A stretch of DNA of 63,605 nucleotides, counting the filler, from Olpidium bornovanus S191 (Eukaryota; Fungi; Olpidiomycota), in NCBI GenBank assembly GCA_017911155.1. It is 30 parts of 30 records of this genome, joined end to end, with 100 filler letters (N's around TTAATTAATTAA, not from the genome) between each part and the next. Parts side by side here need not be neighbours in the genome. Positions count along the whole stretch, not along the records: positions 14,490 to 21,350 come from JAEFCI010003911.1; 29 more parts are not named here. One strand, 5' to 3'. The translations under genes and the position numbers were made by a program. Position 1 is the first letter of the stretch. Each line of letters opens with the position of its first letter. Below, piece by piece: positions 14,490 to 21,629 of this stretch. The notes beneath the pieces are model-generated. The model saw only the letters and a list, made by a program, of their open reading frames with translations, ran no database searches and was not told the DNA's origin.

Positions 14490-16672
14490 GCGACAACGGC
14501 GCCGGCGCCCTTGGTGACAGCGTCGCCGGCGGCCTTGGCTACAGCGTCGTTGCCAGCCTTGGTGACAATGTCGTCGGCGCCCTTGGTGACAACGTCGCCG
14601 GCTCCTTTGGCGACAACAGCGCCGGCGCCCTTGGTGACAGCGTCGTCGGCGCCCCTTGTGACGACGTCGTCGGCGCCCTTGGTGACAACGTTGTCGGCGC
14701 CCTTGGTGACAACATTGTCGGCGGTCTTGGTGACCACGTCGTTGCCGGTCTTGGTGACCACGTCGTTGCCGGCCTTGGTGACCACGTCGTCGGCGCCCTT
14801 TGTGACAACGTCATCGGCGCCCTTGGTGACAACGTTGCCGGCTCCCTTGGCGACAACCGCGCCGGCGCCCTTGGTGACAGCGTCGTCGGCGCCCTTTGTG
14901 ACGACGTCGTCGGCGCCCTTGGTGACAACGTTGTCGGCGCCCTTGGTGACAACGTTGTCGGCGCCCTTGGTGACAACATCGTCGGCGGTCTTGGTGACCA
15001 CGTCGTTGCCGGTCTTGGTGACCACGTCGTCGCCGGCCTTGGTGACCACGTCGTCGGCGCCCTTTGTGACAACGTCTTCGGCGCCCTTGGTGACAGCGTC
15101 GTCGGCGCCCTTTGTGACAGCGTCGTCGGCGCCCTTTGTGACAACGTCGTCGGCGCTTTTTGTGACAACGGCGTCGGCGCCCTTTGTGACAACGTCGTCG
15201 GCGCCCTTTGTGACAACGTCGTCGGCGCCCTTGGTGACAACGTCGTCGGCGGTCTTGGTGACAGCGTCGTTGCCGGCCTTGGTGACGACGTCGTCGGCGC
15301 CCTTTGTGACGACGTCGTCGGCGCCCTTTGTGACGACGTCGTCGGCGCCCTTTGTGACGACGTCGTCGGCGCCCCTTGTGACGACGTCGTCGGCGCCCTT
15401 TGTGACGACGTCGTCGGCTCCCTTGGCGACAACCGCGCCGGCGCCCTTGGTGACAGCGTCGTCGGCGCCCTTGGTGACGACGTCGTCGGCGCCCTTGGTG
15501 ACAACGTCGTCGGCGGTCTTGGTGACAGCGTCGTCGGCGGTCTTGGTGACAGCGTCGTTGCCGGCCTTGGTGACGACGTCGTCGGCGCCCTTGGTGACGA
15601 CGTCGTCGGCGCCTTTTGTGACGACGTCGTCGGCGCCCTTGGCGACGACGTCGTCGGCGCCCTTTGTGACAACGTCGTCGGCGCCCTTGGTGACAACGTC
15701 GTCGGCGCCCTTGGTGACAACGTCGTTGCCGGCCTTGGTGACGACGTCACCGGCGCCCTTGGTGACAGCGTCGTCGGCGCCCTTGGTGACAGCGTCGTCG
15801 GCGCCCTTGGTGACGACGTCGTCGGCGCCCTTGGTGACGACGTCGTCGGCGCCCTTGGTGACGACGTCGTCGGCGCCCTTGGTGACGACGTCTTCGGCGC
15901 CCTTGGTGACGACGTCTTCGGCGCCCTTGGTGACAACGTCGTCGGCGCCCTTGGTGACAACGTCGTCGGCGGTCTTGGTGACAGCATCGTTGCCGGCCTT
16001 TGTGACGACGTCGTCGGCGCCCTTTGTGACGACGTCGTCGGCGCCCTTTGTGACAACGTCGCCGGCTCCCTTGGCGACAACCGCGCCGGCGCCATTGGTG
16101 ACAGCGTCGTCGGCGCCCTTTGTGACAACGTCGTCGGCGCCCTTTGTGACAACGTTGTCGGCGCCCTTGGTGACAACATCGTCGGCGGTCTTGGTGACCA
16201 CGTCGTTGCCGGTCTTGGTGACCACGTCGTTGCCGGCCTTGGTGACCACGTCGTCGGCGGCCTTGGTGACCACGTCATCGGCGCCCTTTGTGACAACGTC
16301 GTCGGCGCCCTTTGTGACAGCGTCGTCGGCGCCCTTTGTGACAACGTCGTCGGCGCCCTTTGTGACAACGTCGTCGGCGCCCTTTGTGACAACGTCGTCG
16401 GCGCCCTTGGTGACAACGCCGTCGGCGCCCTTGGTGACAACGCCGTCGGCGCCCTTGGTGACAACGTCGTTGCCGGCCTTGGTGACGACGTCGTCGGCGC
16501 CCTTGGTGACAACGTCGGCGGCGCCCTTGGTGACCACGTCGTCGGCGCCCTTGATGACAACGTCGCCGGCTCCCTTGGCGACAACGGCGCCGGCGCCCTT
16601 GGTGACAATGTCGTCGGCGGCTTTGGTGACAACGTCGCCGGCGACCTTGGTGACAACGTCGTCGGCGCCCTT
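14490..16672. repeat. Coding minisatellite, 24-bp unit, about 91 copies
   Basis: Plus-strand unit gtcgtcggcgcccttggtgacaac with variants; 2183 nt / 24 = about 91 units. Confidence 0.97.
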
Positions 16673-17071
16673 GGCGGCAGTGTCACCGGCCGCCTTGGCA
16701 ACCACCAATGTTGAGCCTTTCACAGCGCCGACGGTGTCGACGGCTCTCCTGGCGGCGGCCGCGGCCGCGCCCTTGGCGATGTAAGTCCTCGCGAGGGCCA
16801 CGGAGGCGAAGTTGTGCGACGACCTTACCCCGACGTACTTGACCGTGGTGCGGGCCGTTGCGTATGTGGCGGGCCCGACGAGGCCCACCAGCCCGGCGTT
16901 GAGAAAGCGCTTCTGGTGCCCGGCGTGCGAAACCGGCGGCGCCGCTTCTTCAGAGGAGGCGGCGGCGGCCGGCGGGAATCCTACGGGCGCCGCGCGGCCG
17001 GCGGCGGCGGCGAGCGCCAGCACCGCGGCGAGGACGAGCGCGGATGAGGGTTGGCGGCACGTGATCATCAT
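14490..17071 (-). CDS. Secreted octapeptide-repeat protein (consensus KGADDVVT x about 91), 3'-truncated
   Basis: ATG at 17071; signal peptide MMITCRQPSSALVLAAVLALAAAAGRA-APV; dibasic HQKR; about 80-aa unique region; then a 24-bp tandem array from ~16672 to the contig edge with no stop. Confidence 0.85.
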
Positions 17072-17131
17072 GAATGGGAAGCGAGGGTGAGGTGGGGCCT
17101 CTGCGGCGGCGGCCTATCCAGGGGCGTGCGG

Positions 17132-17445
17132 GAAGGGTGGAAATTAGACGGAAACGGACGGGCAGGCGAGGGTCGGAGCGAGCGGAGGGGAGCGTGGAGG
17201 GGGAAGTGCGTGAAGGGTGGAAATTAGACGGAAACGGACGGGCAGGCGAGGGTCGGAGCGGGGCGGAGGGGAGCGTGGAGGGGGAAGTGCGTGAAGGGTA
17301 GAAATTAGACGGAAATGGACGGGCAGGCGAGGGTCGGAGCGCGGAGGGAGCGTGGAGGGGGAAGTGCGTGAAGGGTGGAAATTAGACGGAAATGGACGGG
17401 CAGGCGAGGGTCGGAGCGGGCGGAGGGGAGCGTGGAGGGGGAAGG
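17132..17445. repeat. Tandem repeat, 4 x 77-81 bp, purine/G-rich, immediately upstream of the octapeptide-repeat gene
   Basis: aaattagacggaaa(c/t)ggacgggcaggcgagggtcggagcg...ggagggg agcgtggagggggaagtgcgtgaagggt recurs at about 17141, 17221, 17302 and 17379. Confidence 0.93.
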
Positions 17446-18694
17446 GCAAAAGGTTAAAGCAGTCGCTTTGCTAGCTTCTTTGATTCTCTATTTCTCTCTC
17501 CCTCTCTCTCTCTCTCTCTTTCGCTCTTTCTCGCTCTCTGCCGTTTCCTTGACGTGCGGGCCCCCGCGGGGCCCTCCTCCCGCGGAGGATGGTTCCTTAT
17601 AGGCGAAGCAATGTGAGAGAGACACATAGTGTGAGAGATTGAGAGCGAGAGAATGAGAGAGAGAGAAAGAGCGCGCTGAATGGAGAGAAAGCGAAAGACC
17701 ATCGGGGGAGCCACACTCAGGGACGCGAGTGGCCCACGAGGGCGGCCGCGGGGGAAGGTGGGGTGGGTGTTGGGGAGGGTCGGTTCAGCTGGGGGTTTCG
17801 GGTGAGCTGCACGGGCGCGGAGGGAGTGGGGCGGGCCGGCCGGGGGGTCGGGGAAAAACGCGGTTGGGGGGGAACGCGTGGGGGGGGGGGGGGGGGGGCG
17901 GGGGGGGGGGGGGGGGGCGGGGGGACCCCGGTCAGTCAGGGGGAGGAGCCCCTTGAAGGGGACCGGCAACCAGGCCGGGAGAAGGAAAAAGGATCAGTGC
18001 GCAGACGCAGGCCTCGAAGCGAAACGGGAAGCAGGGTCGAGTGGGAAAAAAACAACTCTTTCGTGGGCGTTTTGCAGAGGAACTGTCCTTGCTCCGTTTA
18101 CTACTCCTAAAGCATTTTTACGGCGACGACTTTCCCGCGGATTTTTTCCGGGAGGGGAAGGGGGGGCTACGAAAAGGGGTGGGATGTCCTTCCGGCCGCG
18201 CGAGTGCTCACATCCTGTCGCGACGGTCTGCGCGGCTTTTTGATCGCAGGTCATCGAGGTATGGTACATTCCGTTCACTTTTTCGTTCACTTTTTCTGCC
18301 GACTTCGGCCCCCCACGATCCAACCCACTTGTTATAATCTTCTGTCCTTTCGTCTCAACGAAGGGGAGGGGAGGGGGGGGGGGTTACCTTCCAGCAGAGA
18401 CTTTGCTTTCCGCGCAGAACCGGCCGGCTTCCCCGCGGAACCCCGGGGTTTTTTTTTTTTTTTTTTTTTGGTTGCCTTTGTCACTCGTCAAAGTAGACGG
18501 CGCACCGGCGGTCCTTCGTATTCTAAACGGACGCGCGCTGTCGGGGCGTCAGGTCTGCCGCCGACGCAGCGCGCAAGCGTCGGTCCCGCGCCGCCGTACC
18601 CCCGTTCGATTTTACGACCGGACGAGTGCGCCGCCGCACCGACCCGAAAACCTGTGACGTGCTGGTCCGGCTTGGAGCGCGCCGCCCGCTCGAG

Positions 18695-18701
18695 TATAAA
18701 A
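18695..18701 (+). promoter_or_regulatory. Possible TATA box (TATAAAA)
   Basis: Isolated TATAAAAG in very GC-rich sequence, followed by a pyrimidine-rich stretch. No ATG-initiated gene could be confirmed downstream. Confidence 0.3.
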
Positions 18702-19729
18702 GGGGTCTCCTCGGGGTCGGGGCCCGATCGACGGCCCCCTCCCAATCCCGCGCTCTCCCTTGGGCCGTCGCTTCAGTTCGCAATCCCCTTCTCCCCCCTC
18801 CTCACCCCAACGAATAAAGCGAAGAGGCATTCTCCGACGCGGCCGTCGGGGTTTCGCCGAAGAAAGTTTGAGCGCGGCTCCGCCCCGTCGGCCTCGCCAC
18901 TTCTTCCCGCTTTCTTTCGTTGTTCCGCTCGCCGTCGGACCGGGGGCCGTCGCGTTCGCGGCCGCCGGCGCGCGGACCCGCGCGCCGACCCAGGAGGTAA
19001 AGTTTGACGCGTTCCCGCCCAGAGCTCTTCCCTCGAACCCAAAACTCGCTCCTGTCCCGGGGAGGTGGGGTTGCGGGCGCCGCCGCTCGGAAACTCGAAA
19101 CGGCGTTTTCGTTTTCGCGGACCCCGCGCGGGCTCCGCCGACCCCTCGGCTTGTTCGGCGCGCGGGACCCCGCCTCCCCTCGGAAAACGCGCCGCCCGGA
19201 GGCCGCGCGGGACCGGGCGGTTTGAGGGGGAGGGGGAAAAAAGAAAAATCCAAAATAAAAGGAAAAAGAAAAAAATCCGTCGCGATTTCTTTCTCCATTT
19301 GCGCAAGTACGCCGCAACCAACCAGGACCACAAACAGGGGTGGTTACGGGAACGGACACCATAAGGGCCGTCAGCGACGGCCCCTCTGCTAAAGAATCCG
19401 GAGCATTGGTGGCGCGGACCGCCCGTCGGCGGCACGGCCACTGTCGGAGCCACGCTCGTAACAGTCGTCTCGGTCCCGCGTAAGACTTGCCGGGGACCGC
19501 CGTCGAAGCGTCTGCGTTTGAAGTGCCGAAATCTCGTCTCACGACAGCAGTCCTTCGATTGTGGCAATTTTTTCCCGGGTGTTTCGATTTATCTTGCAGA
19601 CCGATGCGTCTGATGCAGGCATTAGTGCCGGCCTTCACGACTTGGTGCTTGATGGTCGCAATTACTTTATTGTTTACGCTTCCCGCGCATCAACCGGCTG
19701 AACGAACTGAACGAACTCAAATTTGCACC

Positions 19730-21090
19730 CCAGGAAGAGGAGGCTCATACCAACGGTCTGGGCATGCGATTACTTCCGCCCGTACCTGCTCGGTTACCTG
19801 TTCACCGTCGAAACCAAATCACCAGCTGCTCCAATGGATGTTATCGGCACAAAAAAACAAAGCCGTGTTGGTTGTGGGCGCTTTGAATTGGAGAGTCCAT
19901 CATAGCGCCCGCCCCGGTGGGCTGGACGGCTTGCCTGGGAGGGGGGAAAAATCCCCTCTCGGGGAGTGAATCGCGCTTCACCCTCACCCGACCACAACAA
20001 GAAAAAATCAAACCTCCGTCTTTGTTTCCGCCGCTAAGGCCTTGCCACTTCTTGCATCGGCAATACTACTGGCAAGGAATGACGCGTACCGCCAAATGCG
20101 ACGCAGGCAGCTGTGATGCCGGTCAACGTAACGAAATTCGTACACACCGTCCCCCAGGATTCTTCTTCCCACCCGACATTCCCCCAGCCTGGTTGCATAC
20201 CATTTCACTAGATTGGACCATCGGCCGTCCACTGTCGCGAAACTTTGACGCCATTTTTGTTGTCGTCGATCTCCATAGCAAGCGGGCTCACTTCATTCCT
20301 TGTCGATCAACTGACTCAGGCACCAACACTACCCAGCTCGACCACATTTTTCGCCTGCACGGACTGCCGTCTACCATCATCAGCAATCGTGATCGCCCAT
20401 TGTTAGCATTTTTCGGAGGTCGCGTCTCTTCATGACATCCGGTGCAACCTCTCCTTTGCGTTTTGCCCACAAATTCATGGACAGACAGAGCGCAGGAACC
20501 GGACTCTCGTGGAAGTCTCCCGGTCATACATCTCATATCAAGACAACTGGACATGCCTTATTTCCACTTCTAGTTTGTTCTCAATAATCAGCGTCAAGCT
20601 GTCACTGGCGAAGTTCCAGTTCCTTTTTCTGAAAGGACCTCGGCGACCATCCACCCAGCGCACTTGTGCGCCCGCCGATCCTTGCAAAACTGCCACTACC
20701 CATGCCGCGCCCCTCGCGGACAATCCTCTCAGGGAAACACACTCTTCGTCTGGACAGGGCCACCCAACGGACTGATGATCGCGAAAATGTCACACCGAGT
20801 TTCTTCATAGGAGACCTTGTTCTTCACACTGCGCAATTCTTCCCCCCTCGGTCAATTCCGCAAGGACCTCCAAACTTTACTCCTTTCCAAACCACTTCTT
20901 TGATCTCATTGGAGCTACACCTCTTTCTGCCTTGTCCTTTTACTGTAGTCAAGCTCCTCCTCCTCGCCTCATCCTAAATATTTCCTCAGTCCTGTACTCG
21001 TACACCGAATGAACACAACACGAAACCTGCCCCCCTTCGCTGCGCACGCTTCGAACAGAATTCACCCGTCATTAATAGTTCACATCTTTT
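19730..21090 (+). mobile_element. Degenerate Ty3/Gypsy LTR retrotransposon pol fragment (RNase H + integrase)
   Basis: VWACDYFRPYLLGYLFTVET (RT-RNase H). CDAGQRNEIRTHRPPG..LHTISLDWTIGRPLSRNFDAIFVVVDLHSKRAHFIPC..IFRLHGLPSTIISNRD, then CPQIHGQTER (integrase core). Several frameshifts. Confidence 0.9.
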
Positions 21091-21152
21091 CCTTCGTCGC
21101 CCTTCCTCGGCGTGTCTCCGTTCTTCTAAAGTTAAAAAATAGTTTTTTTTTC

Positions 21153-21340
21153 GGCGTCCATTGCCAGTAGTGCAACGGCAAGGACACCTGTGGCCCCCAA
21201 TGCGATCATAGACCGCTTAGAAGGGACCGAATGCCAAAAATAAGTTTAATATCATTATGTCCCCCGGAGGGGACGATTCAGATATTAAGCTGAATAGAAC
21301 AGATACTACACTTGATCTAAGCCAATAGGCCTGAGAGGAT
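21153..21340 (-). ncRNA. U2: U2 spliceosomal snRNA
   Basis: Reverse complement reads ATCCTCTCAGGCCTATTGGCTTAGATCAAGTGTAGTATCTGTTCTATTCAGCTTAATATCTGAAT. It has the GUAGUA branch-point pairing sequence, stem IIa ATTCAG/CTGAAT, stem IIb GTCCCC/GGGGAC, Sm site ATTTTTG and stem-loop IV TTGCC-GTTGCACTACT-GGCAA. About 188 nt. Confidence 0.96.
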
Positions 21341-21629
21341 TGGGGAAAAANNNNNNNNNNNNNNNNNNNNNNNNNNNNNNNNNNNNNNNNNNNNTTAATT
21401 AATTAANNNNNNNNNNNNNNNNNNNNNNNNNNNNNNNNNNNNNNNNNNNNCATGGACACGTACGGTACCGTTGCCCTTCCAGACTAGAAATCTAAAATGC
21501 GAATTGTCTGTTGGACGCCCACGCCTTTCACGCCTCTTATCCCCCCTCCAGCGCCACACCTCCCGTTCATTTCTTTTTTCTTTTCTCTCTCCCGCTCTCT
21601 CTCTTTTTTGTGCAGTCGTTCTACCGAGA

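Follow-up and report, generated by a model that had tools for sequence, protein, structure and literature searches.

The window analysed here is a stretch of 63,605 nucleotides from the genome of the fungus Olpidium bornovanus S191 (assembly GCA_017911155.1). Its positions 14490–21350, which come from record JAEFCI010003911.1, open with what is probably a minus-strand gene for a secreted protein made largely of tandem octapeptides. Translation of the minus strand between 14490 and 17071 gives 860 codons without a stop, starting with an ATG at 17071 and open to the contig edge. The coding sequence (CDS) is therefore partial: its 5' end is complete and its 3' end is cut by the contig edge, so that the C-terminus of the octapeptide-repeat protein, whose open reading frame (ORF) exits the contig at 14490, is absent.

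Most of this ORF is a single 24-bp array of 91.0 copies (14492–16674), detected by Tandem Repeats Finder (TRF) with 88% matches, 0% indels and a score of 2980. From the TRF result and the unit tables we could assign 90 octapeptides and one partial unit to residues 134–860 (14492–16672, minus strand). The consensus octapeptide, KGADDVVT, is encoded by AAG GGC GCC GAC GAC GTT GTC ACC. Exact copies occur 33 times; 29 unit types were counted in total, and the 28 non-consensus types carry small or conservative changes (G/A/T/S, D/N/G/E/A, V/A/I, T/A/I, K/R/N). The second Val (V7) is invariant and K1 is present in 88 of the 90 full units. Val makes up 22.8% of the 727-residue repeat region, Asp 19.1%, Ala 16.6%, Gly 12.9%, Thr 12.7%, Lys 12.1% and Asn 2.5%; the region contains a single Ser (0.1%) and is devoid of F, W, Y, C, H, M, P, Q and L. 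Its isoelectric point (pI) is 4.3 and its net charge about −52. These data bear out the original prediction of more than 720 strictly 8-periodic residues that lack aromatic residues and Cys and run off the contig. The estimate of about 91 octapeptides agrees with the 90–91 clean units found by us; left uncounted were three degenerate octapeptides at the array edge (AVDTVGAV KGSTLVVA KAAGDTAA; residues 110–133, 16673–16744, minus strand). One of them, KGSTLVVA, keeps K, G, V and V, with three of those codons silently changed.

Units at odd and even positions do not alternate (identity 0.849 versus 0.848). A weak higher-order period of 10–11 units was detected within the array, with maxima of unit-to-unit identity at lags of 10–11, 21, 30, 40–41, 50–51 and 61 units (14492–16672, minus strand). 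The peaks at 10–11-unit lags point to block duplications within the array. The corresponding higher-order repeat is irregular, about 250 bp long, and can be written as AGN-TGN-TAD-ADN-ADD-ADDA-AGAVVA-AGD....

The protein starts with MMITCRQPSSALVLAAVLALAAAAGRAAP..., in which an Arg-containing n-region is followed by about 15 hydrophobic residues and by small residues at the likely cleavage site; a longer N-terminal stretch as translated reads MMITCRQPSSALVLAAVLALAAAAGRAAPVGFPP.... Residues 1–28 (16988–17071, minus strand; MMITCRQPSS, then ALVLAAVLALAAAAG, then RA|AP) look like a signal peptide, as had been claimed. Of the 29 open stretches of non-repeat DNA that begin with an ATG, none has a 14-residue window more hydrophobic than the one at this N-terminus (Kyte–Doolittle value 2.71). 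From this resemblance we infer that the protein is secreted. The KR dipeptide placed at residues 54–55 by the original prediction is present in the translation (16907–16912, minus strand). It is the only KR, it is not statistically remarkable, and one RR occurs as well, at residues 108–109. Judged by its sequence, the KR may be a Kex2-type dibasic site closing a short pro-region, and Kex2 processing at this position is possible. The hydrophobic and basic stretch that follows (residues 56–109; 16745–16906, minus strand) is unique, with no Pfam or NCBIfam match and no homologue in the word-index searches. AlphaFold2 (AF2) models it with a predicted local distance difference test score (pLDDT) below 50 and one low-confidence helix. 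Residues 29–133 taken together have a pI of 10.4.

Homologues of this protein were sought by a word-index search in 5.8 billion proteins and by a HMMER search in 1.84 billion representatives. The whole protein gave two word-index matches (P0001 and P0002), both of which are chance repeat matches, and residues 1–135 gave none at candidate lengths of 473–1505 or 149–472 residues. HMMER returned 755 matches at E ≤ 1e-3. The 21 that we read among the best 150 of these are all unrelated 8-residue repeats matched through their periodicity (for example TDPVYTPG, TSDVVQQV, EGEVLPEG, KAPEEVVT, GAGNVITS and GDDLVTLG). Among the best 150 of the 755 matches there was no self match and no best-matching stretch beginning before query residue 78; N-terminal-only matches weaker than about E 1e-9 could fall beyond these 150, a range that the word searches partly cover. 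The search of metagenome contigs found no related locus. That of prokaryotic genomes found one locus confirmed by tblastn (L001:5001–8795), from a Planctomycetaceae metagenome-assembled genome (JBGSVD010000264.1). It encodes a very long RTX protein (Pfam HemolysinCabind, E 1.7e-92, 16 matched stretches), and the likeness to our protein is a weak, gapped, motif-level one (TKAGNDVVT against TGVGNDIVF; E 3e-4 for the two sequences compared on their own). This RTX protein is itself organized in a super-repeat of about 115 residues that holds TGxGNDVIxGG motifs. Sequence searches of the PDB with two blocks and a profile recovered designed repeat proteins and chance matches only, with 3ULT (discussed below) absent from the results, and in the ESM Atlas no match was usable and recognition scored low. 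The literature searched contained no paper with the octapeptide, and an exact-product look-up found no called gene with this product on record. Hence, the claim that the octapeptide-repeat protein is an orphan stands for the word-index, HMMER, metagenome and PDB searches, in libraries that cover eukaryotic genomes thinly.

We also scanned the full protein against Pfam at E ≤ 1 and re-scanned it in blocks of 192 residues. The only full-protein matches were Fibrinogen_BP, LbR_Ice_bind and Cornifin; neither the RTX repeat HemolysinCabind nor an ice-nucleation repeat was reported. The N-terminus matched no family in Pfam or NCBIfam, where NCBIfam produced sub-threshold noise only. For Fibrinogen_BP (PF08017) the whole protein scored 90.5 bits and the 192-residue blocks 25–28 bits, against a cutoff of 50. 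We rejected this family because it falls below the cutoff on blocks, because we read it as a match of periodicity, and because the gene lies in eukaryotic surroundings. The Cornifin match is likewise read as a period-matching artefact, and we caution that period-matched Pfam matches of the Fibrinogen_BP and Cornifin kind are meaningless. LbR_Ice_bind (PF21300) scored 51.4 bits over the whole protein, with a cutoff of 30. Whole-protein Pfam scores build up over many period-matched units, and we read this match as a resemblance in pattern rather than as homology.

The fold of the repeats was modelled in two AF2 runs. In run 1 the input was a set of 24 repeats with a pseudo-multiple sequence alignment built from nine blocks of the protein itself; in run 2 it was residues 56–261 as a single sequence, without ligands. 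One of the five models of run 2 was confident (pLDDT 72, predicted template modelling score 0.64, repeats at 90 or above). In this model each octapeptide forms a 5-residue strand, DVVTK, and a 3-residue turn, GAD; DSSP carries some of the strands through the turns, as for in-register parallel stacking. Comparison of the model with 48,161 chains by VIA-align placed 3ult_B, the ice-binding beta-roll of Lolium perenne, first (Z 13.6, 114/114 residues). The next matches (Z 11–12) are beta-helices, namely curli CsgA, RsaA, the Ca2+-dependent MpAFP and trimeric autotransporter heads. Foldseek found no significant match, and every row that it listed is a beta-helix. The composition also fits beta structure, with beta-branched Val and Thr, with Gly, Asp and Asn at the turn positions, and without Pro. 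Taken together, the Pfam profile and the single confident model are suggestive of the same small two-sheet beta-roll, on support that is fragile. The original prediction had proposed a solenoid of eight residues per rung. The strand/turn pattern of the model and the match to 3ULT suggest a rung of 16 residues instead: if the array is folded, one coil most likely comprises two octapeptides, as also indicated by beta-rolls of known structure and by the 16-residue coil of InaZ. The beta-roll 3ULT has 14–15 residues per coil, in two strands, and RTX rolls have 18; in our judgement a single 8-residue rung would be too short to close a coil. The second Val (V7) probably faces the core.

Several known systems resemble this arrangement in part. 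The ice-recrystallization inhibition (IRI) beta-roll of Lolium and other grasses (3ULT, PF21300) matches the structure of the confident model best, and its profile exceeds its cutoff on the whole protein, which likens the two by sequence only in a formal sense. Grass IRI domains are secreted and built from half-coil repeats of 7–8 residues with conserved inward-facing Val and with Gly, Asn and Asp in the turns. To our knowledge, the family is known from pooid grasses only. Compared with 3ULT, which has about 16 half-coils, the O. bornovanus protein has 90 or more repeats, each strictly of 8 residues and with much Lys and Asp (net charge −1 per unit). The RTX beta-roll (PF00353) shares the motif G-x-(D/N)-D-hydrophobic-x and one short strand per repeat. 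It differs in its period (9 rather than 8) and in its three or four Gly per unit instead of one; furthermore, the gene described here is eukaryotic and has a predicted N-terminal signal peptide. The RTX nonapeptide GGxGxDxUx is lacking, and HemolysinCabind was not among the Pfam matches. Ice-nucleation proteins combine a flexible N-terminal part with 50–100 tandem units that form a long beta-solenoid of 16 residues per coil (PMC12978214), and the fungal ice-nucleating proteins (INpros) of Mortierellaceae have a signal peptide and are secreted (PMC12978214). The overall architecture of InaZ and the INpros is thus like that of our protein, with an N-terminal part followed by a long tandem array. 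The motifs TxT, SLT and YGS are absent from the KGADDVVT array, which contains no Tyr or Leu, a single Ser and no 16-residue alternation. The likeness to RTX and ice-nucleation repeats on which the original prediction had drawn does not extend to membership of either family.

The oomycete Phytophthora infestans is said to produce Car90, a mucin-like cyst-germination protein with octapeptide repeats of the type TTYAPTEE. Car90 reportedly resembles our protein in its roughly 100 acidic octapeptides and its secretion, and a surface or adhesive role has reportedly been proposed for it. Repeats of the Car type are described as Thr/Pro-rich, O-glycosylated mucin, whereas KGADDVVT lacks Pro and combines a single Thr with 23% Val; none of our searches brought up a sequence likeness between the two. 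The repeat region in the minus frame is not a Ser/Thr/Pro mucin repeat (Pro 0, Ser 0.1%, Thr 12.7%); only the disfavoured plus frame is mucin-like. A Kex2-processed repeat protein of the fungal KEP type is not indicated either: dibasic pairs are absent from all 90 units, and the KR and RR dipeptides precede the array. We assign the KGADDVVT protein to no named family and group it with candidate secreted beta-solenoids made of tandem repeats.

The array on its own is no proof of a reading frame, because four of the six frames are open across it (KGADDVVT and RAPTTLSP on the minus strand, GDNVVGAL and VTTSSAPL on the plus strand). For the same reason the minus-strand frame named in the original prediction, which is most likely the coding one, is not unique in being open. 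The array could thus be a non-coding GC-rich minisatellite, with the ORF, its Met and its hydrophobic start as by-products of composition. Consistent with this, the distinct codon variants show no synonymous excess (8 synonymous to 23 nonsynonymous, the neutral expectation), composition by itself would yield a stretch of 133 open codons with a probability of about 0.12, runs of Ala, Leu and Val are frequent in translated GC-rich DNA, and the searches found neither a homologue nor a called gene on record. The unique flank argues for a gene. In codons 1–95, which lie between the ATG and the stop of the plus-strand ORF and where no frame other than the minus KGADDVVT frame is open, the GC contents of the three codon positions (GC1/2/3) are 0.71/0.61/0.87 (chi-square p 2e-4); in the 96 codons that precede the ATG in this frame they are 0.75/0.66/0.62 (p 0.16). 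Across the unique part of the CDS the values are 0.69/0.62/0.84. The excess of GC at third positions thus ends at the ATG and favours the minus KGADDVVT frame. This ATG lies 15 codons past an in-frame upstream stop and is followed by the best hydrophobic stretch of the piece. Zero indels in 91 units fit a constraint on frame, and seven of the eight consensus codons end in C or G. We regard a mere minisatellite as quite improbable and the minus-strand gene as probably real. The other possibility is that the plus strand codes. The antisense ORF at 14511–16784 (plus strand) is open and would describe a mucin-like (LVTTSSAP)n protein that enters from beyond the contig edge and ends at 16784 in a short Ala-rich hydrophobic tail (...STALLAAAAAAPLAM, then stop), comparable to GPI-anchored or cyst-coat mucins. 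Its composition (T, S, A, P, V, L) would suit such a protein, and octapeptide mucin-like cyst proteins such as Car90 are reported from oomycetes. Its variability by codon position (0.82/0.41/0.94) looks canonical; the KGADDVVT frame shows 0.41/0.82/0.94, and since third codon positions are common to both, the array cannot separate the two frames. The ratio of nonsynonymous to synonymous variation relative to the consensus (pN/pS) is 1.12 in the plus mucin frame and 0.55 in the KGADDVVT frame, the lowest of six (others 0.85–2.5). We dropped pN/pS as a means of choosing the frame, because the low value reflects a small number of silent variants present in many copies (ACA 26, GTC 22 and GTG 11 times), which takes strength from the case for coding, and because the antisense partner is inseparable; the unique flank was used instead. 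Coding-type GC3 continues for 95 codons past the plus-strand stop, in the minus frame only. In addition, the plus consensus uses TTG for Leu (one of nine Leu codons in the unique N-terminal part) and ACA for Thr, the hydrophobic tail has only about 13 residues, and a Met with a signal-peptide start on the opposite strand would be a coincidence. A coding plus strand therefore seems to us very improbable. A GC-rich repeat array of this kind can mimic two different genes, as sense and antisense share third codon positions; minisatellite-like arrays rich in GC keep several frames open, and it is the unique flank, not the array, that decides between them.

If the gene is real and the protein secreted, the repeats may be an intrinsically disordered acidic spacer or polyanion that serves as a hydrated coat, a cation sponge or a flexible stalk. 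A number of observations pull in this direction and away from a folded array. All five models of AF2 run 1 were of low confidence (pLDDT 45, with one short strand per repeat) and the other four models of run 2 had pLDDT values of 32–50, so that nine of ten models over the two runs are low-confidence; AF2 also tends to over-predict solenoids for perfect repeats. The superposition on 3ULT has a root-mean-square deviation of 8.2 Å, and 3ULT was not found by sequence, be it through pairwise or profile similarity. LbR_Ice_bind gave 27 bits on an Asn-richer 192-residue block and no score on the first block, and Fibrinogen_BP was equally "significant" on the whole protein, which shows how period matching can generate artefacts in Pfam. 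Disorder could be favoured by the net charge of about −52, and likewise by the pI of 4.3, the presence of only seven common residue types and the lack of any aromatic residue. The ESM Atlas offered no usable look-alike, and the HMMER matches that we read are heterogeneous period-8 repeats, several of them rich in Pro and Glu and probably disordered. On the other hand, 23% Val and 13% Thr without Pro are atypical of disordered repeats, and the units are strictly constant in length with an invariant Val. The one confident model is a beta-roll, and only beta-helices were returned by VIA-align (significantly) and by Foldseek (not significantly). We consider a disordered spacer, the main rival reading, somewhat unlikely. 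The beta-solenoid of the original prediction has one confident AF2 model, 3ULT as the top match and LbR_Ice_bind above its cutoff on the whole protein in its favour, which is fragile evidence.

The explanation we tentatively prefer, without calling it probable, is a secreted protein whose array folds into a long, flat, acidic beta-roll rod that acts as an extracellular structural or adhesive fibre or as a stalk. A nuclear gene, complete at its 5' end, truncated at its 3' end and transcribed from the minus strand, would encode this protein with a signal peptide, perhaps a short pro-peptide ending in KR, and a basic unique segment of about 55 residues. Next would come the acidic array, open at its far end and at least 90 KGADDVVT octapeptides long, folded into an extended two-sheet beta-roll. 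Every octapeptide would contribute one short strand around V-V-T and one Gly/Ala/Asp turn, and two octapeptides would make up a coil of about 16 residues. At least 45 such coils at about 4.8 Å each would produce a rod more than 20 nm long. On its surfaces Lys, Asp, Val and Thr would line up as regular ladders, and the Asp-rich turns might be stabilized by divalent cations. Ice binding, ice nucleation and Ca2+ dependence are possible, and adhesin and effector, as put forward in the original prediction, are candidate roles.

A bolder proposal, which we think doubtful, is that KGADDVVT represents a new class of secreted eukaryotic beta-roll with the shortest strictly regular half-coil and a surface-templating role. 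In this proposal the half-coil of 8 residues (16 per coil) would have evolved separately from the repeats of RTX, grass IRI and InaZ proteins, and flat faces with Val/Thr and Lys/Asp in ordered ladders along more than 20 nm would serve, for example, cation-dependent self-assembly into a cell-surface lattice, or the binding of ice or minerals. If expressed and folded, the repeat would give eukaryotes a new unit of great regularity from which long beta-rolls are built, with an origin independent of bacterial RTX and InaZ and of grass antifreeze repeats. Proteins of this kind attract interest as adhesins and surface fibres, as surfaces that order ice or ions, and as scaffolds for biomaterials. 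If disordered or unexpressed, it would be one more lineage-specific low-complexity ORF at the end of a contig.

The remainder of positions 14490–21350 identifies the contig as eukaryotic nuclear DNA, because it contains a spliceosomal RNA gene and a retroelement remnant. The former is a full-length U2 small nuclear RNA (snRNA) gene at 21145–21342 (minus strand; Rfam RF00004, 136 bits, model positions 1–192 of 192). The latter is a decayed Ty3/gypsy-like pol remnant at 19561–20435 (plus strand), recognized by weak Pfam domain matches in order: RT_RNaseH at 19561–19701 and 19723–19905, then Integrase_H2C2 and rve within 19917–20435. All of these pieces score below the Pfam cutoffs and are correctly ordered, and they are broken by stops and a frameshift. 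A scan for bacterial promoters and terminators was uninformative for this eukaryotic sequence. The GC content is 55–70% over most of the region. A TATAAAAGG motif occurs at about 18693–18703 on the plus strand, within a stretch of 69% GC, with no convincing ORF behind it. Closer to the octapeptide gene, 55 bp upstream of its start codon, an 81-bp sequence is repeated four times in tandem (17126–17444, no strand assigned; TRF, 94% matches, score 573). This repeat is C-rich on the minus strand and is possibly a promoter or 5' untranslated region element. Further along lie a (TC)n microsatellite (17485–17539), a run of about 45 G (17880–17924) and a run of about 24 T (18447–18470).

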